A stretch of 64,000 nt of DNA from Lepidodermella squamata (taxonomy: Eukaryota; Animalia; Gastrotricha). Both the position numbers and the translations under genes were made by a program. The stretch lies in contig JBLDXI010000024.1 in NCBI GenBank assembly GCA_047495785.1, forward strand, positions 2,976,001 through 3,040,000, written 5' to 3'. Shown here in pieces: positions 1 through 47,029 of this stretch (positions are counted from its first letter, which is position 1; each line of letters starts with the position of its first letter). The notes beneath the pieces were generated by a model. That model did not search any database. It had not been told where the DNA came from and saw only the letters and a program-made list of their open reading frames with translations.

Positions 1-1992
1 TTATTCTCAAAACCGCATCGACGCTTATTATCGATAGCTTGTCATTAATCATTATTGTTTACTAAACAATTGTCACTATAAATAGCAGTGAATTTGAAAA
101 TAAACTTAACTCGTATCGTCATAAAACTGGGACTTATACTCTGCTTACCAACATTGGTTATGGGCCCAGGTCGTTGCAACTAAGCTATATATTCACCGCT
201 GCATTTTTCGCTCTATTTTGTCGTAATTTCGCTACCTACATTTTTGTGGTCATATTCATACGATGACTGACAACCACCACCACCTTAAAAGTGATCCTAT
301 CACTCTAACTGGCGCTGATAACTGGACAGCATGGTTCAAGCAAGTTCGCATCAATCTCGTGTCGGCTGATCTCTGAGGTGTTGTTGCTGGAACCGACCCC
401 GAACCCGACTGGGACCGCGTGGCTGCGCCGACGGTAGAACCGGCCGCGCACGTCGCTTGGTCGAAGAAGCACCTCCGCGCAACTGGTCACATGATTTGCA
501 GTATTTCCGCGTCGATTCTAGGGCTGTTGCCTGACTCGGACAACGCTAAGACAATCATGACCGCACTCAAAGCTCGGTTTGAGAATCCTTCGACTGGTAA
601 CGTGATGTTTTTAACTCAACAGCTTTTCACTACAACGCTGCGTGAGGGTGAATCGCTTACGAATCACCTCCATCGTCTGAGGCGAATTCGCGATCAATTG
701 ACCGCGTTGAGCTCGAACCTGCCGGATTCTCAATATATTGTCATTATTTTGAATAGTCTTCCGGCCAGTTATAACCAGGTGGTAACGGCGCTGCGAATTA
801 CGAAATCTCTCGATTTAACCGATGTCGAAGCTGCTTTGGCAACCGAGGATCTACGACGTCTTACGCTGAAATCGAACAAATCTAATGGAGCGAGCGGTAC
901 GAGTTCAGACGTGGCTTTGAAAACCGGCCACGGTAAGTTCCGTAACAATAAGAAGGCCACCATGGCATGTAGGAACTGTGGTCGGCTGGGGCATTTCGAG
1001 CGCGAATGCCGGTCTCCGAAGGAACCGCAAGCGAATTCTGGCGGCAATGGTCGTCAAAACGGCGGTTACAACGGCTACAATCGCAACAATGGCAACTACA
1101 ACAACGGGCGTAATCCAGGCAAGTCGTCGGGTGGCTACTACGGTAAGCCGCGCGCCAAGATGGTGACGGACGACTACGAGGAGCACGGCGAGCGTGTCTA
1201 CAGCCTGATGGTGCACTACGACGACGAGTACGAGTCGAACGAGCGATGGGTGCTCGACTCCGGCGCTTCGCAGCACATGACGAACCAAATCTCGATGTTC
1301 TGGTCCTACGAGGAGTTACCTGAGGACAGCGAACCGGTCCGTGCGGCTGATGGAAAGCCGATGGCATGTCTTGGCATTGGTACAGTTCGGCTGGCAATGC
1401 AAGAAATCGTTTTGCTGCAAAAAGTACTGTTCGTCCCTGATTTAAAGTGCAGTTTGTTCTCTGTAGGTGCAGCCATTAAGAGCCAGGAATGTCGATTAAT
1501 TTTCGACGAAAATCGTTGTGACATTTTTGATAAGAGCAACGACAAGTTGATCGGAGCAGCTTACCTACTACGCAAGATCTTCATTCTTGATGCTGACGTG
1601 ATCCGGCCAACGAAATTCGCGGCCATCGCGGCCGAACCGATTTCTCTGTGGCACCGTCGTTTGGCGCATTGCAACGAGCAAAAATTGCGTACTATGGCGA
1701 AGCAAGTTGATGGTTTCAAAATCGACCCGAAATCGCAACTTGGTTTCTGCGAACCCTGTGTTGCTGGCAAACAGTCACGTGAACCTCATTTTTCTGTGAA
1801 GATTCGGAGCAAGCGCGTGCTGGAGCGCTGTTTCATCGATCTGTGCGGGAAATTCAGCGTCGAATCGTTCACGCGCAAGTTGTACTTCGTTTTAATTATG
1901 GATGATTACAGCCGCTGGACTCACATTCAATTTCTGGCCAAGAAATCCGACGCTATTGATGCTTTTAAACTTTTTCATACTCAGATAACCGC
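1..1992 (+). mobile_element. Truncated Ty1/copia LTR retrotransposon (3' part of 5' LTR, PBS, gag-protease-partial integrase)
   Basis: LTR-like end ...CCAACA at 153 with upstream TATAAA and AATAAA. Gag zinc knuckle CRNCGRLGHFEREC, protease WVLDSGASQHM, GAG-pre-integrase LWHRRLAH...CEPCVAGKQ, integrase start FIDLCG...MDDYSRW. Similarity ends at about 1992; no RT, RNase H or 3' LTR follows. Confidence 0.93.
156..169 (+). promoter_or_regulatory. Primer-binding site GGTTATGGGCCCAG (copia-type, internal tRNA-iMet fragment primer)
   Basis: Starts 3 nt after the LTR-terminal CA and matches the PBS of Drosophila copia-like elements. Confidence 0.85.
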
Positions 1993-2059
1993 ATATTTAA
2001 GCTCCATAAGCATTTATGCGACAGCTGATCGGAGACTAGTTTTGAAGTTCGTTTGTTAA
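263..2059 (+). pseudogene. copia gag-pol polyprotein, defective
   Basis: ATG at 263 (MTDNHHHLKSDPITLTGADNWTAW) is in frame with ORF 419..2059, but there is a TGA at 374-376 where Trp (LW) is expected. Truncated within integrase. Confidence 0.85.
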
Positions 2060-3011: not shown

Positions 3012-3402
3012 TCAGGCTACTCTGTTTCCACGTCTCAATGTCCCAAGCAGATTTCCCATAAAGTTTTCGACGAAATTAAAGAACATTTCAGCATATTTTG
3101 GCTTGATTGTCTGCACGACGGTTGAAACTAGCTCTCCAACCGAGATGAACACACTGGAAATCCTGCGAACGGAAGCAGGCTCTATCGACGGGGATCCGAC
3201 ACTCCAGAGTGTAACATCCAAGATAGATATCATAGCTGGTACATAAGTCACCAAATATATGAAGAACAGAGTGAATGAGATTTTGAACAAGTAAATCTCA
3301 TGTTTTTGCCACGCAGCTTTGGCACTAATGACGGAGTCTCTACTACCATTGCTAGGAATCATGGCGCTGCGGTGTTGGCCAAGGAACTTGAAAATTGCCA
3401 GA
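3012..3402 (-). pseudogene. C-terminal half (end of TM5, TM6, TM7) of a class A GPCR interrupted by the DNA transposon
   Basis: YLAIFKFLGQH...FKISFTLFFIYLVTYVPAMI...RISSVFISVGELVSTVVQTI. Joins in frame to 12857-13665 once the element and one TA are removed. Confidence 0.85.
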
Positions 3403-3404
3403 TA

Positions 3405-3653
3405 CATGCTGTCGGCAGCGTCATCGGTGCCCATATTGCAAGCCGAAAATCCGCAACGACTGTCACGTTTATTTTTAATTGTTTATTAAATATATTATAT
3501 TAAATAATAATATTGTTAATCGGAATACAATGAAAATATTAAATAGCAACCCCTTCAACGTTCAACACGTTGCTAGGGGGCTCGGATGCGGTTTTTTTTC
3601 CCTAAAGCGGCAGCTGCTTCTAACCACTTGACGTCGTTATTCGCGCCAATCTG
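3405..3653 (+). repeat. Left terminal inverted repeat (249 bp)
   Basis: Reverse complement of 12612-12856 except for three small indels in simple-sequence tracts. Confidence 0.97.
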
Positions 3654-3931
3654 AATATCCCTGTATTGTGACTGCTGATAGCATTGCTTTCGCTTTGCTT
3701 AAGGAATGACTAATTATGTTGATATACCTCGCCCTGCTGTTACGCTAGTTTCGCCAGTTCAGAGTTAGTTCTGCCATGAAGCATTTTCTTATCGGATGGT
3801 TGCTTATAGGTGTTACAAATTAATCACAGATCAAAGTTAATCACAGAACCATACATGATGCATTTCAAGCGGGCATGATGTGTTTACCTCTTTGTTTCAA
3901 CTTTTTAAATGTATCTCTAGATTTTTACTTG

Positions 3932-6639
3932 ATGTCAAATCACAGTCTTGGGTCGGCAGGTTTGTTGAAGAAGTTAATGCTTCCAACTGCAACTACTGAC
4001 GATGCAAGTACCCCTCGTGTTCTTGGAGGTTTCCTTCGATTTCTTTGAAAAAAACTGTGAGTCTCCTTCCTATATTATTTTTCAGTCCTCAATGGTGCCT
4101 CTGCGATTCGGAGATCTCCTATGTTGCCTCTTTCGCCTTTGGTTTTGTCTATTGTCTCTACTCCGAAAGCTGTATTGTCGCCGTATATCGGTATTCTTGC
4201 CATCGATAAAAAAATAGTTGCAATTTACAACTTTATTTCTTACTGGTATTAGCAAACTCTGCTAGTTCAGTTTTGACTGCAGTCACACCGCCTAGAATCG
4301 CCCCCAAGCGGTCGTTAGGCGCAGAAGCTGCTCCTCCTATTGGGCTAACACCGGCTAAAACCGTCCCCAAGCGATTGCTAGAAGGGAAAGCTTTGGAAGA
4401 CTACAAAACAATCCGTTCATTAGGTGAGCATTTTATCTATTATGCCAGAATTTCCCTAATAATTGATTCTCAGAAGCTCAACTTGCTGCTACCAAGAGCA
4501 ATCTTGACGAATGTCGCCGTGAGAGGGACATTTTTAAGACTTTTGTACCTCAAGGATTGGCCCTCAACGTCAAGGAACAAAATCCATTAGCTTTATTGAG
4601 TCGCCAAAAACGATGCGATCGGCACAAAGGGCAGCTAATCAAGCCCTTGAATGCGCTGTTCGGGAGACTATCGAGCTTCGGTAGTTTCTATCCTGTCACC
4701 TCCCTGTCTGTACAAGTTAGTTTTTTTAATTATTGCTCAGAATTCATCTACACCTCACTCGTTGTCTAGGTGAACTTTAGCCATGGTGTTGCTGCAAAGA
4801 AAATTTGGGTTGGTGACGATGAGGCTAGGAAAACAGCCCTTAGAAGGTAAGATTTAAACTATTGCTAGCAATTAGTAGCAACTGATGACTTGTTTTAATC
4901 TAGTCTCGTGCGAGATTACTCCACGAAGTATTGGTCCATGAGGACGGTGTTTAAAATACTAAAAACCTCAACATATCAAATAACTCAGCGCGAATTCGAA
5001 CAAGAAAAGAAAATCCTAGCAAACATCCTGCCCATCCAGGTTGTTGTCGTTCCGGAGGGTAAAGACGTGACCAGTGCTGCTTTCGTGCTTCCTAGTCGTC
5101 AGATACCTTACCTTTTTCGCAATGGAATCGTTCCGAAGCCCGTGGCTCCAACTGTCAACATCCGTATTCAAGGCAAATACATTTTAAACTGAAATTTCCA
5201 ATATTTATTTTTATTTCTTTTCTAGGCGATGGTACGATTTTCCGGACGGGCAAATTTCCTCATTACCGACTCAATTACGGCTTTTTTCATCAGAAAGTCG
5301 CCGTCTCAACTGTAACCGAATACACTGCGGGCGTGTTTTTCGGCAAGGAATCGCGAGAAAACCTGGAATATTTATTGCCAGTATTCGATGATTTTAACGA
5401 GCTGAAAGTTACAGGCCTAACACTTGATGATGGTGTCAAATTAGATGTTACACTGTAAGTTGCCTCAGGCTTTTTCCAGAAGTCATTTATTTCAATATTC
5501 TTTAAATATAGTTCCATTTGCGCTGATCTACCGGCTATTGGCAAGCTGGTTGGAACTAGCCACACCGACGCGCTTGGCTGCCCATGTTGCGTCTTCAATT
5601 TTGTTGACGACGCAAAGCCTTTGAATGTTCTCATCGACGAAAACGATCGCAAGCCGAAGCGCGATCTGCCTTCCAGCCTCGTTAAAATCGACGCTGACGA
5701 CATTTACTGGTGCTCTCTTCACTGTGCCTTGCGTATCGCGTTCCTTGTTCTTCGAGCGGTAAGATCGTCATATCTATTCTCATTGCTCTTATTATATTTT
5801 ATTTTTTTTTATAGTTTTTTCTGTTTATGAAGGAGTCCGTGGTGGATTATGAGCTACGCATCTCCCAACTCGTCCAAAGTTACGACCGAAAGGCAGTTGT
5901 CAGCTTTGAAAAGAGCGAGGTGAAAATCAGCAACATGAATCACCACACGCTTTTCAAGCTGCTATTCGATGCTGACGAACTGTGGTCGCCGATGTCGGTC
6001 TGCAGGGGTGGTTGGGAAGTCGATTACGTCCTGAAGCAGCATCGCGGCTCGAAACCATTTAGCGACTTCCTCGCGCAAAAGCAGATTTCCGCCAAGTCTC
6101 TCACTCGCAAGGAGCTTGCTAGCGCAGCCGTTGACCACGGCTTTTTGGTCGAAGGGTCCCCGATTCAGGCCAAGTTGGTCCAGTTCGCTGAAGCCAAGAA
6201 GCTCTACAAAAAGCTATTCGCTCTAATTCGCTGTAAAGATCAGTCTATTCCGATTCCCGATTCCGACGCAGATTTTCACGCTTTCGCGAACCTCGTCCGT
6301 CGGCTTTCGGGATGCTATACCCCCTACCTTCACATATTTCAATTCCACACTTGGGATAGACTTGAACGTCTTCGCCTCGCTGGAACCTATCTTGCCGCCA
6401 TTTCGGGTGAAAATGTCGAAATCCTGCACAAGATCGGGAAAGAACAGCTTGCGCATCAAGTCTGTCTTATAGGCGGTCATGAGAGTCAGCAGATTATGGA
6501 ATTGTGCAATGTCCGTTTGGCCTCGGATATTGGTGCGAATAATGCTTACATCGAATCTCAGCCAACTGTAGTTACATCAGCTGTCAACTTCAGCGATTCT
6601 AATGATTTCGAGCCATTCGATTTCACGTGCGATTGTTGA
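3932..6639 (+). CDS. DDE transposase of the RAG1-core/Transib/Chapaev (CMC-related) type, about 753 aa, 9 exons
   Basis: Phase-consistent exons 3932-4028, 4086-4190, 4253-4423, 4474-4715, 4770-4846, 4904-5172, 5226-5454, 5512-5758, 5815-6639. Motifs in RAG1 order: IRIQGDG (D1), GKESRENL, ICADLPAI (D2), CPCC, WCSLHC, YTPYLHIFQFH (HxxxxH), ISGENVE (E). The 5' exons are less certain than the core. Confidence 0.85.
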
Positions 6640-7874
6640 TTTTTCTTATTTCAATACGACTAATATTTTGAGTATTAATCTGAGTCTTTCAATGGATGTT
6701 TTGCATGGCTTTGTTGACTAAAAATGAGTATTCGTTCATTACTTTCATTTTTCGATGGCGATCTCGTTGTAGTTATAATTCGCAAAAAATCTTGTTTTCA
6801 ATCTTGACTGAATGATAATTATTTGTGGTCTTAGCTAGTCCCACTAATCGATGGGCAATATATTTGTTTAATGCCGCCTTAATAATTGCTTGTATTACTG
6901 ATTAGAGGATACGTCTCTGAAAATACGTTTTTCAAATAGGAATAATTGTGGTTTCATATATTCATTTTGTATAAAATTGACTACGCCGCTTTTCAATCAA
7001 CACTATGTCTCAGCCGATTAATTCCTCTTTTCTTCGTGACTATTGATCGTTCCATATGTTGTTAACCCGTGCAAACCGACATCGGTGATCAGTTCATCAT
7101 CATCGAATAGCTGTTTGAAAATCGTGTGTTTTATTCTATTTTAATTATCACGTTCTGAGACGTCAACCGCCTTAATGATTTGGGGTCTTACCCAGTCCTA
7201 CCGGTATTTCGATAATTCTCCACCTTAAATAATTACAAAAATTATAATTATATTATTGGAAAAATCTATCCGGTGGAATGTCGGTTTTATGGCCATATAA
7301 AACCGCCTTGATATTGTTTAATAATGTATATTTTCTTCTCTGAGTTCGTTTTTTATAACGAAATCTCGTGCTTGATTAATATGGCGAATTCATTATTTTA
7401 TTATCATCGGCTGGTTTCATTGATATACGCTTTCCGATTTTCGATGAATTCGTATTAATTTAGCTCGACTTTCGTTTTCAGCTATCTCAATATTTTTTGT
7501 GATATTATTCGATAATTTCAAAGTTTTACGCCGATAATGTATAGCGGTATACAAAGCCACCTTAATAATATTTATGAGCTCCTAATTGGAATTATCTCCT
7601 GATTTGCTATAAAATAGCATCCTCTCATTGAAACTCAGCTCTTTCTAAGCCGTTCTGTTATCTCTGCACCGACCTATTAATGGTATTGTTCGATCTTCCG
7701 AGCTAAAAATCTTCACTAATTTGCCATTCGGTAATAAATAAACAGGAAACAAATAAAAAGCATGCCATGCGTGTGTTTTATTACGTGTTAAAAATTGCGA
7801 TTGTACAATATTGCGTTGAAGCAGCCATCATTCATTAGACAAAAAGCAACGAGAAAATCGGACAATTAAATGTA

Positions 7875-8312
7875 TCACTTCTTGAACAAGCGCTTAGGTT
7901 TCGGCGCTGGTTGTATTTTGCCCAGCCTCGAACAAAAGAGCCGAAATAAGATCCGGCGTTCCTGCTTGGCAGCACTGCTGTTGCGATCGTGATCGGGGTA
8001 AAGTCGGTATCGATTGCTCATAAGCACGCGAGGCTCGAGATCGAAATAGGCCGCCACCTCCTCGTCGGTTGTAGGTGTTGTAGGGTGGATACGATTATCA
8101 GGATGCTAAAATATAATATAACATAGAGCCAAATAACAAAAATGAAATTAGACTAAAATTACCTCTTCAGCGGTTTTGCTTGGCGTCGTCTTCTGACGAT
8201 CAGCCACGATTCGGGGTTGTCGCCGTTGTTTCGGGGTACTGGGAGTAGCCTTAACTTTTCGCTCCATGATATCTACCTTACGACAGGGGCGCTTATGACT
8301 TGTTGATGACAT
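7875..8312 (-). CDS. Transposon accessory gene: small basic protein, about 126 aa, with S/T-P sites and C-terminal KRLF
   Basis: Exons 8312-8163 and 8105-7875 with a canonical GT-AG phase-0 intron: MSSTSHKRPCRK...TPSTPKQRR...TTPSK...PAPKPKRLFKK. May instead be the 3' exons of the 8354-8944 gene. Confidence 0.6.
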
Positions 8313-8353
8313 GTTAAATAAAATGAGGTTCTAAAATAAATAAAAAACAGATT

Positions 8354-8944
8354 TTAGAATCGAACTGAATTTATACGAATTATAGCCTTGCAAATGGCTT
8401 GCGGCGAGTTTTCAATAATAGGTTTTTTCATAGAAAACGAGACGTTATTTACAAGGCTAGTTCTAGTGTTTCTTTTCACGGCAAACAGCGAAACGGCAAA
8501 GTCGAAACGGCTGAAAATTTCGGCGAGATGTTCGGCCGATAGTTGAATGTAGCGCTTTTTCTCGCTACAAAATTCAAACATTTTACTCGATATCACATAT
8601 TAGTCACTGTTTACCCACCTTTTAAAAATTTCCAGCTGAGCCAACTTACCTACGGGAAAAACGCAATGACGGGCTACGACCTTGAGCTGATTCAGCATTG
8701 GCTTAGCTGCATCGCGATTAAGCTGGGTTTCGAGTGCTAGAGCCACTTGGTTAGCCAGAAATAGCATTTCTTTTCGGCGATCAAAAACAGCAAAAGGATC
8801 GAACAGCTTGAGTTCAAGGACGCGTACTAGCCGCACTTGTTGCTGTTTCTTTAAGTAATCGTCGACGCGCCGAAATTCAGTCACGGCAGAGCCATAAATC
8901 ACAGGCTTCTTCAAAGTTGCGCGCTCTCGCAAACAATAGGCCAT
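8354..8944 (-). CDS. Transposon accessory gene, unknown function, about 178 aa
   Basis: Exons 8944-8619 and 8564-8354 join ORFs 8600..8944 and 8354..8596 through an AG|GTGGGT...TTGTAG intron. Confidence 0.55.
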
Positions 8945-9755
8945 AATTAAGGTGTATAATTAGTTAATGACAAAACTAAGGATCAAAAATATTCAATAGT
9001 ATTAAATAGGTAGATATATACAGAAATATCGAACAAATTAAGGTGGCTAACTGATGCCCAAACAAAATGAGCAATTAATGAGCGCGCAGCTGGATCAATG
9101 CGTAGAATATAGAAACGCTTGGATGAGAAAAAACTAATGCCGCAATAATTATTATAATAATAGCACCAAGCCGCGGAATAGGCGCACTTTCCGCCTTAAG
9201 TAAAAAGATTTTTAAGGTGGAGAGCGCAATATATGATAAGTCTTATAATAAGTGGTAGAGTTGTAACTGGGCCAAAGTAAAATATTTCGCGAATTTTTGA
9301 TATATGTCACTCAAACCGACCGATGCCGCGAACACATGGAAGATTGAGATCGCTATTTCGACCGATCGTACATCAGAGAGACACACCGTGAATTCACGCC
9401 GCCTTAATAAACGCCGGGCGGCGGGCGCGTTACTGCTTGGAGCGCGCGCACGCATATATAGCTTTACCAGGCACCTTCTAGGCACCAACAGGTGCGCTAT
9501 ACAACCTGAATTTCGACCCTTCCGACCACGGAATGACCACGGAATGACCACGGAAAGGTGTCAATATTTGAGAATAAAAGAATTCAATACGCGCGCAGAA
9601 GAATGGCATACGATCGAACAATCGCACACCTTTCAATGCGCTGCGCGCGCGCATTCGAGTGGATAGGCGCTAATATTATTACGAATTGAAGCAAGTGGGA
9701 AGAGGATGAAAAAAATTAAATACGCCTAAACCGCATAACTGAAAAGTAGCAAAAA

Positions 9756-10367
9756 ATGGGCAGGCGCAGAAATGCAGAGCAACTGGCTCAACATCGCGAA
9801 CAAATGCGGTTGATACGCGCAAATAGGACTCCTGACGAAATAGAGAAAGTTCGTGAGCGCGATCGGCGCCGCAAACAAGCCAAAACTGCGCTAATTCAGT
9901 CCGTCAAATCGCAAGGTAATTTTTGGTGAATTTTTAAGGCTGTTATAAATATATGAATAAAAATGCAGATCAGTGTGGCGCGGTAGCATACTTGCCAACG
10001 GGATGCAACTACTCAGCGCGGACAATAAGCGAACGCGACTTCTTGCGAAAACAAGCATTGATGGCAGAAACGTTCGAGGCGGATAAAATTATTGGTAAAT
10101 TCAAGTTTATTATATTTCCAGCCATATTCATCGCATTAATTTTCAGGGCTGTGCGATTTATCGCCGCTCATCGCCAACACACTGCCTCCACTCTCACCTG
10201 GCGAAATCACGCCACTGCTGGCACCGGACGATGCCGCGCAAACGTGGTGGCAAGAAATTAAAGACGATATGAGAAGCAGCTACCTTTCGCCGCCACTGGC
10301 ACGTTTTCGCATAGCGATTCTACCTAACTGTACTCAAAGCAAAATTCCGGCCATTGAATTTCCATAG
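9756..10367 (+). CDS. Transposon accessory gene, about 168 aa, with a basic charged helical N-terminus (STPR-like, putative DNA binding)
   Basis: Exons 9756-9915, 9969-10094 and 10147-10367 are phase-consistent. N-terminus MGRRRNAEQLAQHREQMRLIRANRTPDEIEKVRERDRRRKQAK. AATAAA lies just after the stop. Confidence 0.65.
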
Positions 10368-10618
10368 AAATAAAACAGAGATATAATAACGCCTTCTTTT
10401 ATTTCAACCGCGCTTTTTCAATCGATCATGAAAATATACCAAAGTTTGAGAAAAATTAAAGATATCGAAATTGCAGCAAGCCATTTGAGGATCAATTCAA
10501 TTCTACTTTGCGAATAAGATCATTCATTATTATACATAATTATTACAAAAATCAGTTCAGACTTTTTCGGCTGTTTCGAACATAGAGAATAATTAGAAAA
10601 AGAAATGCAGTATAATCA

Positions 10619-12293
10619 CTACTGCTGAATATTGCCACGACCAGTCAACATGAGATCACCATTAGCAACAGTGGTTATATTAATTTTATCATTTTTTACA
10701 GCCAACAACAGGCCAAAAAAAGCTTTAGAAACGTCCTTACGGTCTAAATTTTCTACAACGTGACTGAAGCAAACATCCTGATTTCTACACAAAACGCTGA
10801 GCTGATTTTGACAAAAGCGATCGTTGTCATCGACAAAACTTAAAATTGAAGAGCTAATTAAATGAATAGGCTGAGATGAGCTATCTAATACAACATCTAC
10901 CGCACCTACACTAATTTCTTCAGATTGGGCATCGGCTGATGATGATTCAACACAACACATGAGACTCTTCTTGGCGATCGGGGTGTATTTGTCCAAAATC
11001 GAGGTTGCTTTTCGCTTTGGTGCTGACAGACGGTCAAGAGGAACTCGCGATATCGGTATTTCTTCGTCAATCTGTTCCGGCTGCAAAGCAGGCTGCTGAA
11101 GGCGGCTTATCGAAAACTGAGTTGTCGGAATGATATCGCATCCGTCTCGATCTATAAATGAATACCGATATTTTCAATTCAAAAATTAGTCGTTGTAAAT
11201 ACTTACGGGGGTAATTTATCAGCCGAACTTCCTTGGAATATGCAAGACCATGAATCGCTGTATATAAAAATAAATATCGATAAGAAGTGAGACCAAATAA
11301 TTATAAAACTAACCTTCGCAGTCAGGGTAGGCAGACGAATCATCCAAGATATTCGTGAATGGTAAAGTATCTAAACAAATATAGTAGATAACGCTAACGA
11401 ATTAATGAAAATCCCAACCTAGAATGCTGAAAATGTTAGTCCTTAAACGAGAAGAAACTTCGATAGCAGGCCTTCTGATGAGAACGTCAGCTGGGATGAT
11501 GTGATCACTTCTTAGGCCACCAATGCGATCCAAAGCTATTGAGCGACTGAAGAGTGGGGCAAACCAGAAGTCGAATTCCTTCTCTTCATACTCCAGCGTC
11601 GTGGCGGAGTTGAGGTGCTTTGCGGTATCGAAAATAGCAGCACGATCATCCCATTCAGGCACGTCTTTCAAAGTCAAGTACGACGCATGCTCTTCTTTCA
11701 TCTCCTGAGTTAACAGATCAAAGATCGGGATGGTTGAATCGATGTCTCCGTTAACCAAGAGTCCAAAGCCATCGTCAACGATGGGTTCAGAATCCACATC
11801 AAAGTTGCAATTAGTACCGATCAACGGGGCACAAGGCAGCTCAAGCTGGTGCGAAGCTGACTCCAAGTAGACCACATCGCATAGCTGAAAGCAACATCAT
11901 AGTTGAAAAAAACAAAAATAACAATCTTGGGTATATAATTACCGAACGAATAATGGGCACATCACAGGATGGCAAGCGGCACCCCAGCTGCTCGAGAGCT
12001 TTCGACACGTAGGTGTTGGTATCGATAGTCTCGACGCGCTTAACAATATCAACCTGCAAAATGCAAAGGGAGTCATTAGCATCATGAAACAGCCTGCTGA
12101 CTTTCAGGCTGTAAATAGTACTAAGAACATAAATTAGCTGGCCGTAAGTTCGAAGCTCGAGCGTAACTGCGGAACGAGCAAGATCACAAAACTGCTTAAC
12201 GTCAACGGTGGCAACGATCGACGACAGCAGCGGCTGATTCGCGATAACACGGCGATAAACATTGCTACGGATAAAAGTCGTCAAACTCTCCAT
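10619..12293 (-). CDS. Rad21/Rec8-family alpha-kleisin (cohesin subunit), about 485 aa, 5 exons, carried inside the transposon
   Basis: Exons 12293-11943, 11884-11419, 11370-11314, 11257-11207, 11151-10619 (1458 nt, open). N-terminal LELRTYGQLIYVLSTIYSLKVSRLFHDAND resembles Rad21 [30 protein letters not shown]. C-terminal CFSHVVENLDRKDVSKAFFGLLLAVKNDKINI...GDLML resembles the Rad21 winged helix ([23 protein letters not shown]...SDII). Acidic linker contains DDGFG. Confidence 0.88.
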
Positions 12294-12611
12294 CTAATAA
12301 TGACAAAGCGGACTTTCAGGTGAGATTAAAATTGCAAGCCGGTGAGTACAAACTATAAACCAAGCGTTGCCTTAAAGTGATAGACGCAATAAAATCTAAC
12401 AGCACCAAGGAAGTCGTAAATAGCTGGCATGTAATCAAACATCAGTTACTTAAAATGCGGTTTGCGTTCTACCCTCGAGCTAACCTATATCTCCGACAAT
12501 TATATGAGACATCGCAAGCAAGCACCAAGAAGCACCATAAGGGACAAAGTTTCTAAGTGTTTGCTATCAACAACATATTAGGGCATTTAGCAGTCTCAAA
12601 TCCAACACGGG

Positions 12612-12856
12612 CAGATTGGCGCGCGAATAACGACGTCAAGTGGTTAGAAGCAGCTGCCGCTTTAGGGAAAACCGCATCCGAGCCCCCTAGCAACGTTGAA
12701 CGTTGAAGGGGTTGCTATTTAATATTTTCATTGTATTCCGATTAACAATATTATTATTTAATATAATATATTTAATAAACAATTAAAAATAAACGTGACA
12801 GTCGTTGCGGATTTTCGGCTTGCAATATGGGCACCGATGACGCTGCCGACAGCATG
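12612..12856 (-). repeat. Right terminal inverted repeat (245 bp)
   Basis: Reverse complement of 3405-3653. Confidence 0.97.
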
Positions 12857-13665
12857 TAGTTGTAAGCCAGCATTACCGTAGATACCCCGAAAATTCCATT
12901 CATGACAAATATTTGAATTGTGAACGAATCGAACCCGGCGAAGTAGCTGTAATCCCACTGGCCGCAAATCGGAACTGCGGTACCATTAGTCAGTCCTTCG
13001 ATCACGATGTAGCGAACCGAAAACGAATACCACGGCCAGTAAATGTAAAAAAATGCGCTGCCACAGCAAATCACCGTTGCAGCAACGATCATTGAAGTTA
13101 TCTGGAATAATATGAAATCATCAAATTTCGCTTGAACGATTGCAATGTGACTTACTTTCTTCGTGTTGCCGTAATAGTTTGGGCTGTTTGAAGTTATGCA
13201 AGCCCGTCGTTCGTAGCTCAAAATAGCCGTCAGAGCCATTCCCATACCGCCGATTCCCCACATTATAATATAAGAAATACTGCATGAATATTCATCGAGG
13301 CGCCAAAATCCATCGGGCACTGTCGAAGATATGCCGTAGGTGTAGGCAAAATGGACCAGAAAGTTTCGAAGTTGCAGGCAGATGTTGATAGCGAAGAAGT
13401 GAACCTTGATTTTACGTTGCTTGTACACGTATATATTGACAGCCGAAGCGACAGTAGCGCTGTAGAAGATGATGTGGTACAAAAGGGGCCATGCGAGTCG
13501 TTCACCGAGAGTTTTATGGGACAAATCATGGAAAACACCGATGTAGTACGGCCGAGGGCCGCCGTAGTTTCGATCGGGTAGGTGAAGCATCAACCAACCG
13601 CTGTTGATGATCGTGGCTGTGTACTCTTGAACTCGCTGACTACCTGCTGAATTGTTTTGAGCCAT
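12857..13665 (-). pseudogene. N-terminal part (TM1-TM5) of a class A (rhodopsin-like) GPCR, disrupted by the transposon
   Basis: ECL1 FWRLDEYSC, TM3 end ILSYERR (DRY equivalent), ECL2 Cys, TM5 VMLAYNY. Probable 54-nt in-frame intron (GTAAGT...TTCCAG). Confidence 0.85.
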
Positions 13666-14665
13666 AATCAAAATTTTATCCTATGTCGAGAGTGAAAGAA
13701 GAAGCTGGTTGCGGAACTGTCGTAGTTGCACCAACAGATACTGCTTTCCTCGCCAGCAACGCAGGTTGGAACTTGATATTTTTTTTCAAAACTAAGCCTC
13801 AACGGCTCTTCCTTAATTCGGTAGTTGAAACTACTTTCCATTTATATCATGCGCGTGCGTGACAGAATGCTGATTGCAGCGAGAAGCTCAAGAAAATGCT
13901 CACATTTAACGCGCAGCTGTTTCGATTTAATACACTCAATCTTCAAGCATAACTGTAAGCGCGAGAATGAGATGTCGCTCACGTTTTGCTAACCCTAATT
14001 GCCGCATTCTCGGGGATACATGATATCAGGAAAGAATCACAGTCGCCCTTAGCGTCAAAACGTGTTCGCAGTGTCAGTTTTTATCAATTATCTATTTATA
14101 CAGCAGGGTGCTCAGGGTTATTGACTAAAATCGGCACTGATGTACTAATTACTAATGCTCAGGTAAGATTGACCGATTGATACTGGAGCTATTCATTCTT
14201 CAATAATAAGATGGTATTCCGGATGATCCAAGTTAAAAACTGGTTTCTTTTGTCTAATTGAAATCGAAATTAGGTTGCATTTTCAAGGATTATTCTTCTT
14301 GTTTAATTCAGCATGATTACCGCTTGAAAAGATGTAAGCAACCTTCCAATTAGCTATATGTAAAAATCATAAAACCTGTGATGTCTATAGAATGTTGGCA
14401 GTTCGAATTCATTTTTTTATTTTATTTTATTTTATTTTATATCGGCTTGCAATCAATCTCAAGGATTATTAGCAATCAAAGTATGTATACGGATGCCTAA
14501 ATTTTTTATTACCGGTTCGGCCGAAAAGTTGAAACTGTTACTCATAGAGAACGGAGTGATCTATGATGTTACTGCATGCCCAAAGTCATTTTTTATCAGG
14601 TGGGCGTAGATTTATTAATTGAGTTTAAATAAGTGGCATTTCGCGATTCATCTATCTATCGACAT

Positions 14666-22506: not shown

Positions 22507-23009
22507 CCTATTAACAATGGCTTCCTAATTGCTGGAGCTATTCGGTTTCGCAAAGTTGGAATATTAGCTTTACTGATTAGACTTGCAAATTACTTGCATT
22601 CAACTCAAATCAGCTGAATCTTACAAAATGGCTGAACTCAGCCCAGTGCATATGCAAATCAGTCGATTCGCTCGTAAGCGCTGCTGCATAGAAAGGCCTC
22701 TTTGCAAAAAAAAGGATCTCAAATCATTTATTTACATTGTGCAATGAAAAGAAGGAAATTAAAATAATGTTATTTTTCGGATAAGTCGAAGAAAGGCTTC
22801 ATCGATCAAGTCAGTATAATTCTGGCTAGAATGGCCGTGATGAAATATCAGGGTCAGAAAGATATGACGGAATTTAGCTTCGACTTGGCATTTGAGAAAG
22901 CCCAGCTGTACCTTATTGAATTCCGAAAATGCCAAGATCAGTAAGACTTGGAGTTTGGAACGGCTACGGCATTGCCAGTAGGCCGTACGAGTTTCAGTTA
23001 GCTGTAGAT

Positions 23010-25090
23010 GAGTCAGAGTGCGAGGTGTTCTTCGGGGTAGAGTCGTGGTTCCGACAGCGGAACGGCACAGGCGAAAACGTAGAGTGGATGGCGTTGGATG
23101 TAGCATGCTCGGGTCAGGAGACGGTGACTTTTGTTACAGTCTACGTCCCTAACGGCGAGCGGGCCTTCGATGCAACCTTTCTGCGTGAGCTGGTGTTGCA
23201 CGGGCCGGTGGATGTTTGTGGTGATTTCAACTGTCACCATAGACGACTGTGGGCAGGAGATAAGCGGGACAATGGGGCGGGTAGAGAAGTGCTCAAGTTG
23301 GTAGAGGATGGTTCGTTAAAGCTCATCAGCGCTGGTGTACCGACGCACAAGCACGGCGGGCAGCTAGATCTATGGCTGGCTTCGCCGGACTTGGCCGGTC
23401 AGTTCGGTGTACCCGATGTGGGCGGGTGCTACGCGGCAGTGACCATAACGTGGTTGCGGTCGACTTCGAACTTAGCGCGAGTCGTTCTCCCTATCCCAAG
23501 GTGAGGTTCGACTACAATAAGATGAACGAAGGATTCTGTCAGGCAGTTGTTAAAGACAAGCTGCTGAAGATTCCGCTGCCTGCAAGAGCGAGTGTAGAAG
23601 AGGTACGAAGGTTCGATGGCGAAATCACTAAGGCCATGCAGAAGGCACGAGATAGATCAGTTCCAACGGTGTTAGCAAAACAGCTGAAAAAGTACAGGTC
23701 GACACCGCAGATGGCTGCGTTGATCGAGCGTCGACATAAAGCGTTGCGACAGTACCGTTCTACGGGAAACCCTGTGTTTCAGGCCAGGGCGGACGCGTTC
23801 TATGCTCGTTTCAAGGAGTTAGCAGCCATAGCTGAAGAGCGCAAGCACACGCGTAACCTTCAGCGGATGGAAAAGCGTAGAAGAGTAGATTCGGGGGCGC
23901 TCTTCCGGGCTTTTCGTGAGATCACAGCTGAGAGTGGGTCGGCACCAGGACCAGCGATCCGCACCCTGACCAACGAGGCAGGTGATCTCAAGGGCTGAGA
24001 TGAGAAGCGCGGTTCGACGTTTGAAGCTCAAGGCTCCAGGCCGTGATGAGATTTCGAATATTCTCATCAAAAAGGGCGGTCCAGTCCTTTGGGCGTATCT
24101 GCGCCATTTGTACAATATAGCCTAGCTTGTGGGTTCGTGCCGGAGAGGTGGAAGTTGGCCGTTATTGTCCCGCTTCCGAGGTCAGTGAAGGACTTGTCGA
24201 AACCGTCAGGTTACCGTCCCGTGTCGCTTCTTCCGACAGTCGCGAAGCTGCTAGAGCTCATTTTGGCTACTAGGCTAGCTCTTCTTTTCAGGTCAAATAA
24301 TATAATCCCTGATCATAAGTCTGGTTTTCTGGGTCTCGTCCTTCCTGACCGGCCGGACCTTTACAGCCAAGGTGAGTAGTTGCTTGTGAGTGAGACGGCG
24401 GATATCGGCTCAGGGGTTCCACAAGGATCCTCATTGAGCCCTATACTCTTTGCCTTATTCACAGCGGACTTGATGCCGGATAACAACAGTGACGAGCGCA
24501 AGGCCTTCACCGCCTCGTTCGCTGACGACGTGCTCTTGTTCGCTGTGGCTTGCTACACTGGGATGGCGAAGCAGCGGGTGCAGAAGGCGCTGACGCGGGT
24601 CTCTCGTTGGAGCCGACTCTGGAAGTTGCCGCTTAGTCCGCCGAAGTGTCAAATGCTGCGGTTTGGCGGACAAGTCAACGACGACGACAGGCTGTTTGTG
24701 GGTAACGAGAAGCTGCCGAAGGTTGCAACGGCGAAGTACCTGGGTGTCACGTTTGACGCGATCGGGTCGTGGAAGCCGCATTTCGACAACATCGAGGCGG
24801 ATGCGCGATCTCGTCTCGGGGCTCTTCGCCGGGTCTGCTTCCCTGGTTCGCCGCTTGGCTTTGCCTCGCGGAAGTTGCTGTATCTGACGATCGTGAGACC
24901 GGTTCTTGAGTACTCTTGCGTGGCCTGGTTGGATGCGTCGTATGCGCAGAAAAAGCGCTTGATCGTGCTGCAGAACAACTGTTTGCGGGCGATCATCGGC
25001 TCGTCTATTCTGGACAAGCAGGACGAATCTGAGCTCTACCGTCTAACTGGAGTGGAGCCGCTGGAACGCCGCTGGCTGAAACTAGCAGTC
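23010..25090 (+). mobile_element. Decayed non-LTR retrotransposon (APE endonuclease and RT), frameshifted and internally deleted
   Basis: APE: VYVP, CGDFNCHH, GSDH. RT: WKLAVIVPLP, YRPVSLLPTVAKLLE, GVPQGSSLSP, FADD, KYLGV. Spread over four ORFs. Confidence 0.9.
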
Positions 25091-25776
25091 GTCTCAGTGA
25101 GTTATCGAGGCGCGCCGGCAGGTAGTTTCGGAGGCTGGTCAGTTTTTGCAATACTTCATAGAGCTTGATTTTGCCAACCTCCCACCTAGCAACGCACCAG
25201 GTCTACCCGCGACCAAAAACAGCTTTGAATGCGTTGATCAAGAAAATTTACACGGTGCAAGAGCCTTTGCACAACTTTTCAAAAAAATATAACAAATAAC
25301 GAAAACAGAAGTTTGTTTGTATTTGAAAAGCCTCAAAGAGTGCGTTTGCCCAACTTTGAATGGTTTCATTCGCTTCATTAGCTTCATTTCGTTCAATTTA
25401 CACTAGATTAAAGCAGTTTTTTGACCTGCTTTAATGTAGCGTAACTGCGAAGACTGCGACGACGAGGCCATCCCAAGGCCACCCAGTTCGCCTTACAAGC
25501 GCAACCGGGTGAGGTTGGGGGTGGGTTGAGGGTGGCTAGATAAATCCTTCTAGATAAATCACGACCTGACCATACTTGAATATTCATCTAATTTATTTTT
25601 TCAGCATCTAATATCTCTTTTCGCATCTAGGCATTTTTCTCGCTTCTAATTTAAAAATAGCCGGAATTACTTCAGCTTGTTTAACAGAGAAGAGAGAAAG
25701 AAACAGCAGTGCCCGCTAGAGGGTAACTCTGTTCCTCTGTTCCGGTGAATCTCTGCTTAATCACTGTTATTGACAA

Positions 25777-35716: not shown

Positions 35717-38700
35717 TTATTTATTTATTTATTTATTTAAGTGGGTCCCCTACAGAGCAGCAGGCTTCAAAGCAGGATAAACTCAAAAAGCGGTGTAAAC
35801 GCCACGCAACAATAAATCGAATTAATTACGATAAAATTCGGCGTAGTTTTCTGAATATGAACTCATCATAACTTTAGTAGTCCGGCTTATGAATTTTGAA
35901 AAAATTTCGAAAAACGACTTTTTCGACCAAAGTGAGGTCTGAGTCACATTACGGAGTTTTGATGACTTATGTTCCTCAATTTTTGGTGTGAAAAGCTAGA
36001 ATAGCTGACCATCATGTTAGTCCATTGGTTGAAAATCAGAGGCTAAGCCTGAGCGCCTGCTGAGAGGACTGTTTAGTGCGTTTTCCCTGCTTTGAAGCCT
36101 GCTGCTCTGTGGGGGACCCATTTAAGTGCATTAATCCCAAAGTTGAGAGCACGATAACAAAAAGTTTCAAGTGGTATAAAAGTGGCAGAAAATTCGAGTC
36201 ATGTTTCAATCCGTTTCAAAGTTTCATAATAAAAAAACAGAAAATTGTAAACAAGTTGTCGGCAAGAGTGAGCATTGTAACAGATTTTGAAGCCGCAATC
36301 GCATCGTGGGGGAAGGCTAGTATAGGAAGTAATATCAACTGGGCGATGATGAGGACAATGAAAGTGGAGTGGTAAATTGTTAAACAAGAGAGGCCCTGCG
36401 TAACTAAGAGAGGCCTGGCCGTAGTCAAGTCTCATAGTAGGAATTTTGAAGCTGAGACGTGAAGAACGAGTAGAAGATGGAGGATTAGGAACAAAAATAG
36501 ATTTTATAACATCGGGTGCATCACCAGCAAGACATCTGTACATTAAGTTGGCAATGTGCACGTTTCGCTTGCCCTGAAGGTCAAGCCATTTGAGCTCGTC
36601 GCGTAGAGGAGAAGGGTCGGCACAATCCGGCGCATTCATGACAATTCTGACAGCCTTATCCTGCAAAGATTGTAGTTTTTGAAGAGAAGTCGGACAGGCT
36701 TCATTTATAATAATATCGCAGTACTGTAAGTGCGAAAAAATCAAGCAATTTGCCATTGATGATTTCAGGCAGTCCCTATTCAAGCCATTCTTTGCCGCTA
36801 ATTGAAGCGCATAAATACCTTTTCGAGCCTTAGAGCAAGCTTTCTCGATGTGTTCCTTGTAGAGCAGTTTTTCGTCTAAAGTGAAGCCTAATAAACAAAT
36901 CGAATCTGTCTGTTCAATTGAGACCCCGCCTATAGTAATATTAATTTTGCCAATTGATTTCAGTGTAACGATCATTAGCTGGGATTTTTTGCCGTTAACT
37001 TTGAGACAGTTAGAACCTAGCCATAGTACGAGATTGTCAAGGTCTTTTTGAAGAACGCTTTCAATTTCAGTCACATTTTTAGCCGAGAAATAAATGGTGG
37101 TGTCGTCTGCATATTGAATAACAGTAGACTTGAGTGATGTCAGAGGCAGTTCATTAACGTAGATCGTAAATAATAAAGGGCCCAAGACGGAACCCTGAGG
37201 TACTCCGAATTCTAAGCTTGCAGTCTGAGATAATTGTCCATTAATTTTGGTAATTTGCTTGCGATCCGTAAGATAACTAGTTAAAATCTCGATTGCCGCT
37301 TCATCAAAACCCGCACTGCGCAAGGAGGACAAAATACCGGTCATGCTGAGAGTATCAAAGGCCTTGCTCATGTCAATGCTGACTACAACCGTCGTGAAGC
37401 CCTTATCAATAGCACATCGCCAATCATTTGTCATTTTCGCAAGACAAGTCTCGGTTGAGTGATTTTTCCTAAAACCGAACTGAGAGGGTGAAATGAACTG
37501 AATCTTACGTAGATAATCCTTAATTTGAAATGAAAGACAACGTTCGAATGTGCGAAAAACAGGAGATAAAATGGATATCGGCCGATAATTTCCTACGATG
37601 TCTTTAGAGCCATCTTTGTACAAGGGCGTAACAGTCGCCTTTTTCCATATTTCCGGAATTTTCCTTTCTTCAATGACCTTGTTGAAAATTAAAGCTAGAT
37701 GAGGAGCGAGAAAGTCAGACGCTATTTTCAGTACGCATTCGGGAATACCATCCGATGCTGTTGTAGGCTTACGAGGCGATAACTTGCTAAGGCATTCTTT
37801 GACGATGGCAACTGAAATATTGCCAAAATGAAAGTGATGATCGGTTGAATAATTCCTATCGATATTTTGAGGAGTATCGATGGACTCAGCGGTTTTTCTA
37901 CCAAGATTTGCGAAGTAGTTGTTAAAATCGTTTGCTTTCGTCGTCGACTCTTCTGAATTGAAGTGAGAGAAATTTGAGCCCTTATTTTTCTTCTGTCGAA
38001 AATTTTCTATAACTCGCCACATTTTACCGGGATTTCTACCGGCATCAGCTACTTGCCGGCAATATCTAGCTCTTCTTATTTTACGACGATGGCGTTGATC
38101 AGACCGTAACTTTTCTCGAGATGACAGTAATTTATCGATGTCGCGTTCTCGGGGTTCGCAAGTTGGCGTCTTCTTCTTAGAATTGCCTTTTCGATCTGGC
38201 ACTGTTTCCGATATGGCTTCCTGAATCGCACTATTAACCTCTGCTAATAATTCTTTAGCGTTCTTTTGTGATGCGAATGGGTAATTCACGCGTTTTCTAA
38301 GCGCATCTATGAACCTGTATTTGTTCATTTTGCTAAAGTCTTTCCCAGTGATGTTGGGCATCGAATAGGTGGCAACTTTGTCTGCCCGTGTGATTCCTCG
38401 ATTACGTGATTCCTCGATGATCGCTAATACCCTCTGTAGCCCCAGTTAAAGCGACCTTCTCTGGCGGATACGAGGTGCAAAAATAATCCAACATGGTTTC
38501 AGATTCAGGACGCGTGATAGTCTTCCTAAAGGATAAGTCTAGTCCATGAGCGCGAATCAAATCCAGAAAATTGCTCTCGTTCACCGAATTCATGAGATCA
38601 ATATTGAAATCTCCACCGATGACATAGTTTTGCGCGTTAGGAAATCTCGCTTTTAATTTTGTAAGAAAATCATGCATCAAAAAGTAGTCTTCATCCGGGG

Positions 38701-39700
38701 GTATAGGGTCGAATTTAGGGCGGTATAGGCATGTCACGGCAATTGTAATGCCTTTTTCGTCCCTGGCTAAACATGTGATGTTTTCTAGATATCCGCACGG
38801 AATACTGGCTTTGTCAATAACCTTTAGCGACTTGTTTACAAGTACGGCCACCCCACCTCCGACATTGCTATTAGAACTGCCCGGCTTAAGGGGTCGAAGG
38901 CTCCAAGAGCATTCGTGAGCGGGAAAATTCGATTCAATATCTTGCGCTACTGAGCTAGTTCGACCTTTTTCGGGTTGGCTTATATCAGGTAAATTGACTT
39001 CAGAGAATAGTAGAAAATCAGGTCTAATGACGTCAAGAAATGTGAACATATAGCAACAATTTTGCTTCTCAAACCACGCAAATTAAAATGTTGGAACGAA
39101 TAGTACGAGTCATTAGATCGAATGAGCCTGGTGATGTCGGAAAAGGGCACAATATTATCATCGGGACCAGGGTTAAGACTAACATCACCACATCGCATAA
39201 GAAGTAACAAAAATAAGAACACGTTTTTACGTGTGCTGTTCGATTTTGATTTCGGGTCGAGCGGGGCTGCTGTGAAAAAGATCAGCAAGTCTTGGCCATT
39301 TGGTTCCGCTGTCCGTGGTACTACGATCAGTGGGTGTGGCATTGCAGGTCCGAGGTCAGCCGATGTCGACGTTGTGAAAAACTCGGCTATCCGGCTTTAA
39401 GCTTGAAAGAGGCACGTGCCGTTTCATCATGTGTTGACACGAATGGCAGCGTAATCGCTTTTGAATTTGAAAAATTTTCAAATTTTGTTGACCTCATTTC
39501 GTGGACAACCATGTCTATCGACCAGTTTCGCATCAAGATCGTCGATACCAGAACCAGCCAGAGGGGGCTGAACGCAGCCACGGATCACCGATCAACAGCG
39601 ACCCAGTCGCCATGGTGAAAATAATTAATAAACACAAACAGCGCAAGTGCTATGAGCAAAATGCCTGCCGTCCCCTATCTCAGAAAATTTAATATTCAAT
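35717..39700 (-). mobile_element. CR1/L2-like LINE (2A-like peptide, APE, RT), frameshifted, with (TAAA)n tail
   Basis: APE: HFNLRGL, LFSE, LYRP, GGDFNID, SDH. RT: YRPISIL, QFGFRK, DMSKAFD, GVPQGSVLGP, YADD. Frame breaks near 39050 and 38400. TAAA repeats at 35717-35740. 5' end approximate. Confidence 0.9.
35741..36121. mobile_element. MITE with TTAA TSD (Kolobok/piggyBac-type target) inserted in the LINE 3' end
   Basis: TTAA|GTGGGTCCCCTACAGAGCAGCAGGCTTCAAAGCAGG ... CCTGCTTTGAAGCCTGCTGCTCTGTGGGGGACCCAT|TTAA. Confidence 0.88.
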
Positions 39701-45720: not shown

Positions 45721-47029
45721 AACTGCTAGACGACGACCGAAGTCGAGCAGATGGCGCCGGATCGCCATCGAAGATAATTCGAATTTGAACAGGGTTGAAG
45801 GTAGCCCGATCTATCTCTACTATGGGTTTGAAAAGGACACCGTCGAGGAGGCGCCTCTCTTCTTACCATGGTGGATCTATCATCACCAAAAAAAAACTTC
45901 GACAACAACGACAACGACAACTGAAGCTTCGGTAAGCAATTTTGATTTTGTATCGGCAAAGACTTTTAACCGTCGCAAAATATGTCGATAGGTAGAGGAA
46001 AAATTACAGAAATGTAATCGCTAGGACACATTAAGGCATTATTAGCAATCGGTTAAAAAGTCGTGAATTGAAGGGGTTGTGGGGGTATCGGCCAGACCGG
46101 ACAAGAAAATGAAATTTTAGCCCGCTTTTTCGTCCAATTTGAGAGGTTTTGCAGCGTTTTTGTTGCAAAATCTTCACAATTTCCTTGCTTCGCTCGTTAT
46201 CTGTTTGAAATTACTAATCGTTTTGGCAAATACAGTATAACAAATTTTCCATTCCTGGCAGCTCCAGGATCCAAGATCGCACCCTGCTCTGTTCCATTCT
46301 GTACTCTGTTATCTGTGATAGCTCGAACATTTTCATTTTCAAAATTGGCGTGAGGAACAAATTTTCCCTCTGTCATGGCAATATCAATGAATTCTGCTTC
46401 GCAAAAACATACATTATACTGTTACTGTTAACGATATATTAATAGGTAGTCTTTCGATGCCTTGGGCCAGGAGGTATAGTTATCTGCCGACCGACACAGT
46501 GCGCGAAGTAGGATGCTCGAGTTGGGGGTACTTTCAGGCATTTTCTGGCCCGAAATTTCAGACCAAAGGGTCCCCCCTGTGGTCTGAAATTGTGTGGTCC
46601 CTGTGGTCACTGACAGCTTGCCAGAATAACGAAATGCCATACCCAGCAACACCTTATACCAGCATGCCTGCTTGCGAGACTGCTGAGAAAAAGAGAGTTA
46701 TCATCGTTGACTCAGAAAATTATATAACTCTCGCAGAAGCTAAAGCAATGTGTACGCTGTATGGGGCCACACTGCTAGCAACAATCAAGACATCGAAGGA
46801 ACTCGAGAATTATTCGCCGTATCTTGGCTCTTATTATGGTTGGATCGGTTTGTCGCTGGTTGCCGGACAATGGACGCGGTCGGATGGCGCGCCGTATGCC
46901 AACTTTCCGGCCCGGGCCACGGGCAGACCCGCTAGTGGCAAGGCCTGCGCTTGGCTGTATAGGTCTGAACTCGTAGACACTGATTGTAACTCTTCGGCGA
47001 ATGGTGTCCTCTGTGAAACCTATCAATGA
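45721..47029 (+). pseudogene. C-type lectin copy 4, 5'-truncated and frameshifted
   Basis: Lacks the signal exon. A 116-bp insert at 46497-46612 (CAGTG...CACTG, flanked by ACA) shifts the CTLD exon frame. Confidence 0.8.

Follow-up and report, generated by a model that had tools for sequence, protein, structure and literature searches.

A 9.45-kb block in the genome of the gastrotrich Lepidodermella squamata has the build of a DNA transposon that carries, along with its presumed transposase, a gene for a cohesin kleisin. The block occupies positions 3405–12856 of the 64,000-nucleotide stretch analyzed here, which we call the window (GenBank assembly GCA_047495785.1, contig JBLDXI010000024.1, positions 2,976,001–3,040,000 of the forward strand). 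We read it as a cut-and-paste transposon with four genes, the kleisin among them, that is young, present in few copies and a member of a family restricted to its lineage, and give this reading a probability of roughly 0.6.

The block ends in near-identical terminal inverted repeats (TIRs) of about 250 bp, with a TA on each side. The left TIR (3405–3653, plus strand) starts with the tip CATGCTGTCGG and the right TIR lies at 12612–12856 on the minus strand; both were delimited by inverted-repeat matching, tip counting and blastn, which gave an identity of 96.8%. The arms fall into three blocks, each 100% complementary (3403–3566/12695–12858, 3567–3595/12668–12696 and 3596–3646/12621–12671, or 164, 29 and 51 nt), and the mismatch between them consists of two small indels. 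The 40-nt tip, which begins with CATGCTG, occurs exactly twice in the window where no occurrence is expected, and blastn of the window revealed no second copy of the element within it. When the element is deleted together with one TA, an uninterrupted minus-strand open reading frame (ORF) of 404 codons is restored, encoding a multi-pass membrane protein with several hydrophobic spans. The ORF in the left flank (3012–3402) corresponds to the 3' half of this gene and the ORF in the right flank (12859–13671) to its 5' half, both on the minus strand. The two TA copies, at 3403–3404 and 12857–12858, form the target-site duplication (TSD). The restored host frame supports both; the left copy is also seen in an empty-site contig and the right one in the flank sequence and in contigs of the public run X1, described below. 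The element interrupts the coding exon of a gene for an animal membrane receptor, with TA as the duplicated site.

The element is present in two public sequencing runs, X1 (2024, kind unstated, read as DNA) and X2 (2015, labelled 'RNA?'), whose contigs were compared with window positions 6950–12949. One X1 contig runs from the left flank directly into TA and the right flank, with the element absent. This empty-site contig has a word depth of 73.6 and differs from the window at three flank positions. The right flank as it reads in the window is covered by no X1 contig, and a junction between the element and this flank is therefore missing from X1; in three X1 contigs the right tip leads into other sequences. 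In X1 the interior of the element reaches a word depth of about 313–352, roughly 4.5 times the value for the empty-site contig, and its identity to the window is 99.9%. By these data the insertion is polymorphic and X1 carries more than one copy of the element at other sites, with the tool's own caveats that Logan contig depth is not copy number and that the lack of a contig is no proof. No more than one base in a kilobase separates the copies, and none of the differences listed falls in the coding sequence (CDS) of the kleisin. Depth over the outer 100 nt of the TIR is about 6.5 times the interior depth, and one contig has only this outer part in common with the element, which indicates that shorter derivatives or sister families share the tip. 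The three X1 contigs mentioned above depart from the right tip (12857) after T, not after TA, and other insertions may carry 2-bp duplications other than TA. X1 also has an 8-nt deletion at 7009–7016 relative to the window, where X2 contigs show loose ends, representing a small indel between samples. The analysis supports a DNA transposon with defined ends and several genes whose insertion is recent. On these points, namely an element bounded by TIRs and a TSD, TIRs separated only by tiny indels, and a recent multi-gene transposon, the first-pass annotation of this DNA has held up.

The kleisin transcript spans 10394–12349 on the minus strand, as defined by Pfam, X2 contigs, the spliced ORF and a search of a language-model atlas. 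The CDS (12293–10619) encodes 485 amino acids (aa) in five exons at 12293–11943, 11884–11419, 11370–11314, 11257–11207 and 11151–10619. The four introns, at 11885–11942 (58 nt), 11371–11418 (48 nt), 11258–11313 (56 nt) and 11152–11206 (55 nt), all follow the GT..AG rule, and all four appear as joints in X2 contigs with zero mismatches, confirming in the run labelled 'RNA?' the full spliced protein that had been predicted from the letters. X2 contigs cover 10394–12190 on the minus strand without mismatch, and their depth over the kleisin is 74–100, far above that of the neighbouring element genes. The gene is intact and spliced, and its transcript is present in public contigs. Coverage in X2 stops near 12349, approximately 260 bp inside the right TIR, and the idea that the TIR serves as a shared promoter of both end genes was dropped for this reason.

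The N-terminal end of the protein, encoded in exon 1, matches Rad21_Rec8_N (PF04825) at residues 27–92 with 27.2 bits against a cut-off of 23.1 (E 4.4e-6). In the atlas, this end alone falls among clusters that are 89–99% PF04825, with scores of 0.92–0.94 and 195–205 shared features, and for the C-terminal end alone the two best clusters are 91–96% PF04824, with scores of 0.94–0.95 and 195–196 shared features. Scores for both ends exceed the tool's own guide values, and the condensin kleisins are the next clusters after Rad21_Rec8 for the C-terminal end. The architecture is that of the alpha-kleisins Rad21/Scc1, Rec8, Rad21L and COH-3/4: a Rad21_Rec8_N domain in exon 1, an extended acidic, serine-rich linker of low complexity and, in exon 5, a candidate C-terminal domain resembling a winged helix, all in one 485-aa ORF similar in size to meiotic kleisins. 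Unlike these proteins, it is very divergent and resides inside a mobile element. From its sequence, we accept the product as a putative alpha-kleisin, very divergent and with both ends in place. Its strong divergence from canonical kleisins, with both end domains nevertheless kept, suggests long-term constraint somewhere.

The depth of the kleisin region in X1 equals that of the rest of the compared interior, and no contig is 90–99% alike, so neither a separate host copy nor full-length copies that lack the kleisin are in evidence. This suggests, without proving it, that the gene travels with every copy of the element. Such a pattern bears on two other explanations for its presence. In the first, to which we give slightly less than even odds, the kleisin and a small adjoining gene are a host locus that was picked up whole, as in Pack-type elements, with its own promoter and no benefit to the element, and the gene is intact only because the copies are young. 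The small number of differences between copies means that decay has had no time to show, the end of X2 coverage places the promoter at an internal, unique position, and a sister copy of the element diverges at 8960; all three are as such a passenger would have them. On the other hand, no parent gene at ≥90% identity is visible in X1, the kleisin has the same depth as the element, and the retention of both end domains in so distant a protein points to constraint. In the second explanation, the kleisin is a working host gene under host-level selection, for instance a fast-evolving meiotic paralogue of the Rec8/Rad21L type, whose only copies now lie inside the element. Its strong representation in X2 and the lack of a visible separate host copy in X1 would agree with this, as would the fast divergence of meiotic kleisins and their multiplication in some animals, as described in PMC10497282. 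The insertion is absent from X1, however, and the gene positions therefore vary between samples, which is odd for an essential host gene; we consider this explanation unlikely.

At the other end of the element, a gene on the plus strand at 4002–6639 reads inward from the left TIR. Its open nine-exon model encodes 736–739 aa, with exons at 4002–4056, 4086–4190, 4253–4423, 4474–4715, 4770–4846, 4904–5163 (or 5172), 5226–5454, 5512–5758 and 5815–6639. Seven of the introns are 50–62 nt long; the first, at 29 nt, is doubtful, and we are unsure of the first two exons. Of the transposase words sampled, 18% were found in X2 contigs. We infer that this protein of about 739 aa is the transposase of the element. 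It contains candidate catalytic residues D308, D388 and E667, together with a CxxC at 406–409, an HxxxxH at 638–643 and K671. The first aspartate lies in a strand ending in GDG; the second is followed 18 residues on by CxxC and, 229 residues further, by HxxxxH, with E-x3-K coming 24 residues later, giving the compact pattern D, D-x17-CxxC, HxxxxH-x23-E-x3-K. This order and spacing correspond to those of mouse RAG1, with its residues D600, D708, C727/C730, H937/H942 and E962. A loose regular expression of the pattern matched only 8 of 20,000 shuffles of the protein. Database searches were run with single exons as queries (Pfam, PDB, atlas and HMMER). For the last and largest exon, an exhaustive HMMER search of 1.84 billion protein representatives returned only two relatives, P0001 and P0002, with 42–46% identity, which lie on short contigs of 1.5 and 0.6 kb from other samples and whose genes are also split by introns. 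Conservation of the last motif block extends to two related sequences, P0002 and L001. In L001 (1–1475), a related transposase gene of another sample, two extra introns occur where the window has a single exon. On the basis of the motifs, we somewhat favor classing the protein as a putative zinc-binding DDE enzyme of the supergroup that comprises CMC (CACTA/Mirage/Chapaev) and the RAG1-like Transib elements, and leave its branch unnamed.

Several results weigh against the reading proposed here. For the kleisin, the C-terminal Rad21_Rec8 domain (PF04824) in exon 5 scores 13 bits, below the Pfam cut-off of 22.7 (E 0.066), so that the earlier view that both SMC-binding ends are recognizable stands in Pfam for the N-terminal end and in the atlas for both. 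An AlphaFold model of the C-terminus from the single sequence was unusable, with a predicted local distance difference test (pLDDT) score of 48, and no relatives were detected by PDB phmmer for either end, by a word-indexed search or by a metagenome scan. For the transposase, PDB gave no match either by phmmer with two exons or with a profile of three sequences; the atlas, the JGI metagenome scan and a word-indexed search of the exon with the second D were all blank; the model of the last exon from a three-row alignment was equally unusable (pLDDT 42); and no sequence or structure search ties the protein to any known superfamily. The shuffle test, moreover, was designed after the motifs had been seen. 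With regard to the insertion, the three flank differences mean that the empty-site contig could represent a paralogue rather than an allele. Finally, all copies seen are nearly identical, and the intact frames are hence no evidence of selection.

The RAG1-like label of the first-pass annotation finds support in the motif pattern only; none of the homology searches connected the transposase to RAG1 or Transib, and the structure model is unusable. The 2-bp TA duplication and the CATGCTG tip differ from the 5-bp TSD and the CAC heptamer-like tip of Transib/RAG1. The element resembles Transib/RAG1 in a transposase of about 700 aa and in the order and spacing of D, D, CxxC, HxxxxH and E-x3-K. It departs from them in lacking detectable similarity to the RAG1 or HzTransib chains in PDB, in its 250-bp TIRs that start with CATG, in the intron-rich transposase gene and in the three further genes carried. 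Transib TSDs vary, with 5 bp, 3 bp and TA on record, TA being reported for one lineage, Oriex (bioRxiv 10.64898/2026.08.26.747230). Pfam on all transposase exons of our element gave no match (E up to 10 for most exons, up to 1 for the largest); Pfam and InterPro give no match for Transib transposases either, and one Transib transposase is recorded as having no InterPro match (bioRxiv 10.64898/2026.08.26.747230). The 2-bp TSD lies within the 2–4 bp range produced by CMC elements (same source) and agrees with the Mirage branch of that group, which current classifications place as the sister group of Transib and in which large CACTA elements with extra genes are common. The tip differs from the CAC of CMC, and the comparison with CMC covers the TSD, the tip and the gene content.

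The TA duplication is also a hallmark of Tc1/mariner, and the element could instead be a non-autonomous Tc1/mariner- or pogo-type element moved in trans, with the 739-aa protein being another captured or orphan gene. The protein has no detectable homology to any transposase, as this would predict, and no Pfam-recognized DDE/D transposase was found, leaving the TA duplication as the only trait of Tc1/mariner/pogo that fits. Set against this are the rarity by chance of the D, D-CxxC, HxxxxH-E-K pattern and the relatives of the protein, which are likewise intron-split genes on short contigs of other samples. Moreover, the three other X1 insertions seem to share only T after the tip, and the TSD may not always be TA. 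Such an origin strikes us as quite improbable, and the inward-reading 739-aa protein remains our candidate transposase. Public data contain next to no relatives of its family, which may form a new branch close to the base of the RAG1/Transib/CMC group.

Two more genes lie between the transposase and the kleisin, bearing out the expectation of further spliced ORFs. The first is an orphan partner gene at 7878–8944 on the minus strand, convergent with the transposase, with a four-exon model of about 320 aa. The model needs two introns of 33–35 nt, and an in-frame stop can be removed only by the 33-nt intron; the claim that all frames are open thus applies to the transposase and the kleisin but not without reservation to the partner. 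Its exons have no Pfam match and no homologue was detected, and thus no kelch or RAG2-like domain was found; X2 gave no depth over its coding exons (8150–8944). X1 contigs that are 90–95% alike over this gene represent sister copies, of which a diverged one has the partner gene and departs from the window at 8960, just upstream of the partner start. The second gene, at 9756–10367 on the plus strand and convergent with the kleisin, encodes a small basic protein of 168 aa in exons 9756–9915, 9969–10094 and 10147–10367, separated by GT..AG introns of 53 and 52 nt. There are only traces of it in X2, and its first exon has no Pfam match. Between the transposase and the partner, X2 contigs cover a stretch at 6950–7750, 3' of the transposase stop, which is a 3' untranslated region or a separate RNA. 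It contains, at 7065–7128 and about 450 nt past the stop, a 66-nt antisense copy of transposase coding positions 5944–6009 (83–87% alike), which could base-pair with the mRNA of the transposase.

The basic element is probably the transposase plus its convergent orphan partner. The departure of the sister copy at 8960 and the content of 8961–12611, namely the small basic gene and the kleisin, suggest that this region is an added module now moving with the element. A nested element as the source of the module was rejected, as there are no internal TIRs in 8900–12700. The kleisin had previously been described as convergent with the transposase, in parallel with ProtoRAG. It is indeed on the opposite strand, but the two genes just described stand in between, and the convergent neighbour of the transposase is the orphan partner. 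The element resembles ProtoRAG/RAGL (RAG1L plus RAG2L) in its TIRs, in the inward-facing genes at both ends and in having a second gene convergent with the transposase; it differs in that this gene is an unrelated orphan that no Pfam family matches, in its 2-bp TSD and in the kleisin as a third module. The analogy is therefore a loose one. A parallel to the cargo is found in KDZ elements with TET/JBP dioxygenases (PMC12730594) and in giant cargo elements (PMC6431247), in which a complete chromatin- or DNA-related gene is likewise moved alongside a transposase. In contrast to those, the present element has an animal host, a small size of 9.45 kb and a cohesin kleisin as cargo, for which we found no precedent: no paper describing a kleisin as transposon cargo was found in the library searched, in agreement with the initial impression that such cargo is unfamiliar.

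The rest of the window is animal DNA, with class C receptor genes in tandem, a C-type lectin ORF, and LINE-type (long interspersed nuclear element) and copia-type retroelements. The tandem array on the minus strand at 14666–53436 comprises at least six class C receptor genes without introns (ANF_receptor plus 7tm_3), of which some are truncated. A copia-type gag-pol ORF with Retrotran_gag_2, zinc knuckle, Pol_BBD and gag_pre-integrs domains lies at 419–2056 (plus strand), and two LINE-type retroelements with apurinic/apyrimidinic (AP) endonuclease and reverse transcriptase lie at 22929–25165 (plus) and 36202–39049 (minus). The former accounts for the G+C-rich block at 23–25 kb (55% G+C). A C-type lectin domain ORF is found at 46457–47026 on the plus strand. 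RNA genes were ruled out, with no Rfam family anywhere in the window.

In the sequence of events that we propose, a basic two-gene element would have gained 8961–12611. The element has moved as one unit and inserted into the receptor-gene coding exon, duplicating TA. The two ends of the predicted kleisin would correspond to the parts of Rad21/Rec8 that bind the neck of SMC3 (N-terminal) and the head of SMC1 (C-terminal), and the product would most likely close host SMC1–SMC3 rings into a variant cohesin. A cut-and-paste transposon rises in copy number only when the gap it leaves is repaired from an element-bearing sister or homologue, and cohesin keeps the sister or homologue repair template close. 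A role for the kleisin in the element's own spread, most plausibly in sister-templated repair of the excision gap, is a speculative idea, and a passenger gene is at least as likely as a kleisin that aids the element. The uses suggested in the first-pass annotation, namely synapsis of the ends, repair of the gap from the sister and biased segregation, are speculative as well. We find it doubtful that a selfish transposon hijacks host SMC1–SMC3 through its kleisin, be it to hold the donor sister for copy-back and gain copies, to pair its ends, or to blunt an SMC-based host response. If true, this would be the first eukaryotic mobile element with a subunit of an SMC complex as a working part of its life cycle, in an undescribed RAG1-like transposase family with 2-bp TSDs.

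An element with its own kleisin would make the link between cohesin and copy gain directly testable, and would be a naturally occurring case of a private cohesin variant. Were the kleisin only a passenger, a whole working gene of chromosome biology would still be travelling through an animal genome, probably with a gain in copies, and such transport by transposons would offer one way in which the kleisin paralogues used by many animals in meiosis could arise.

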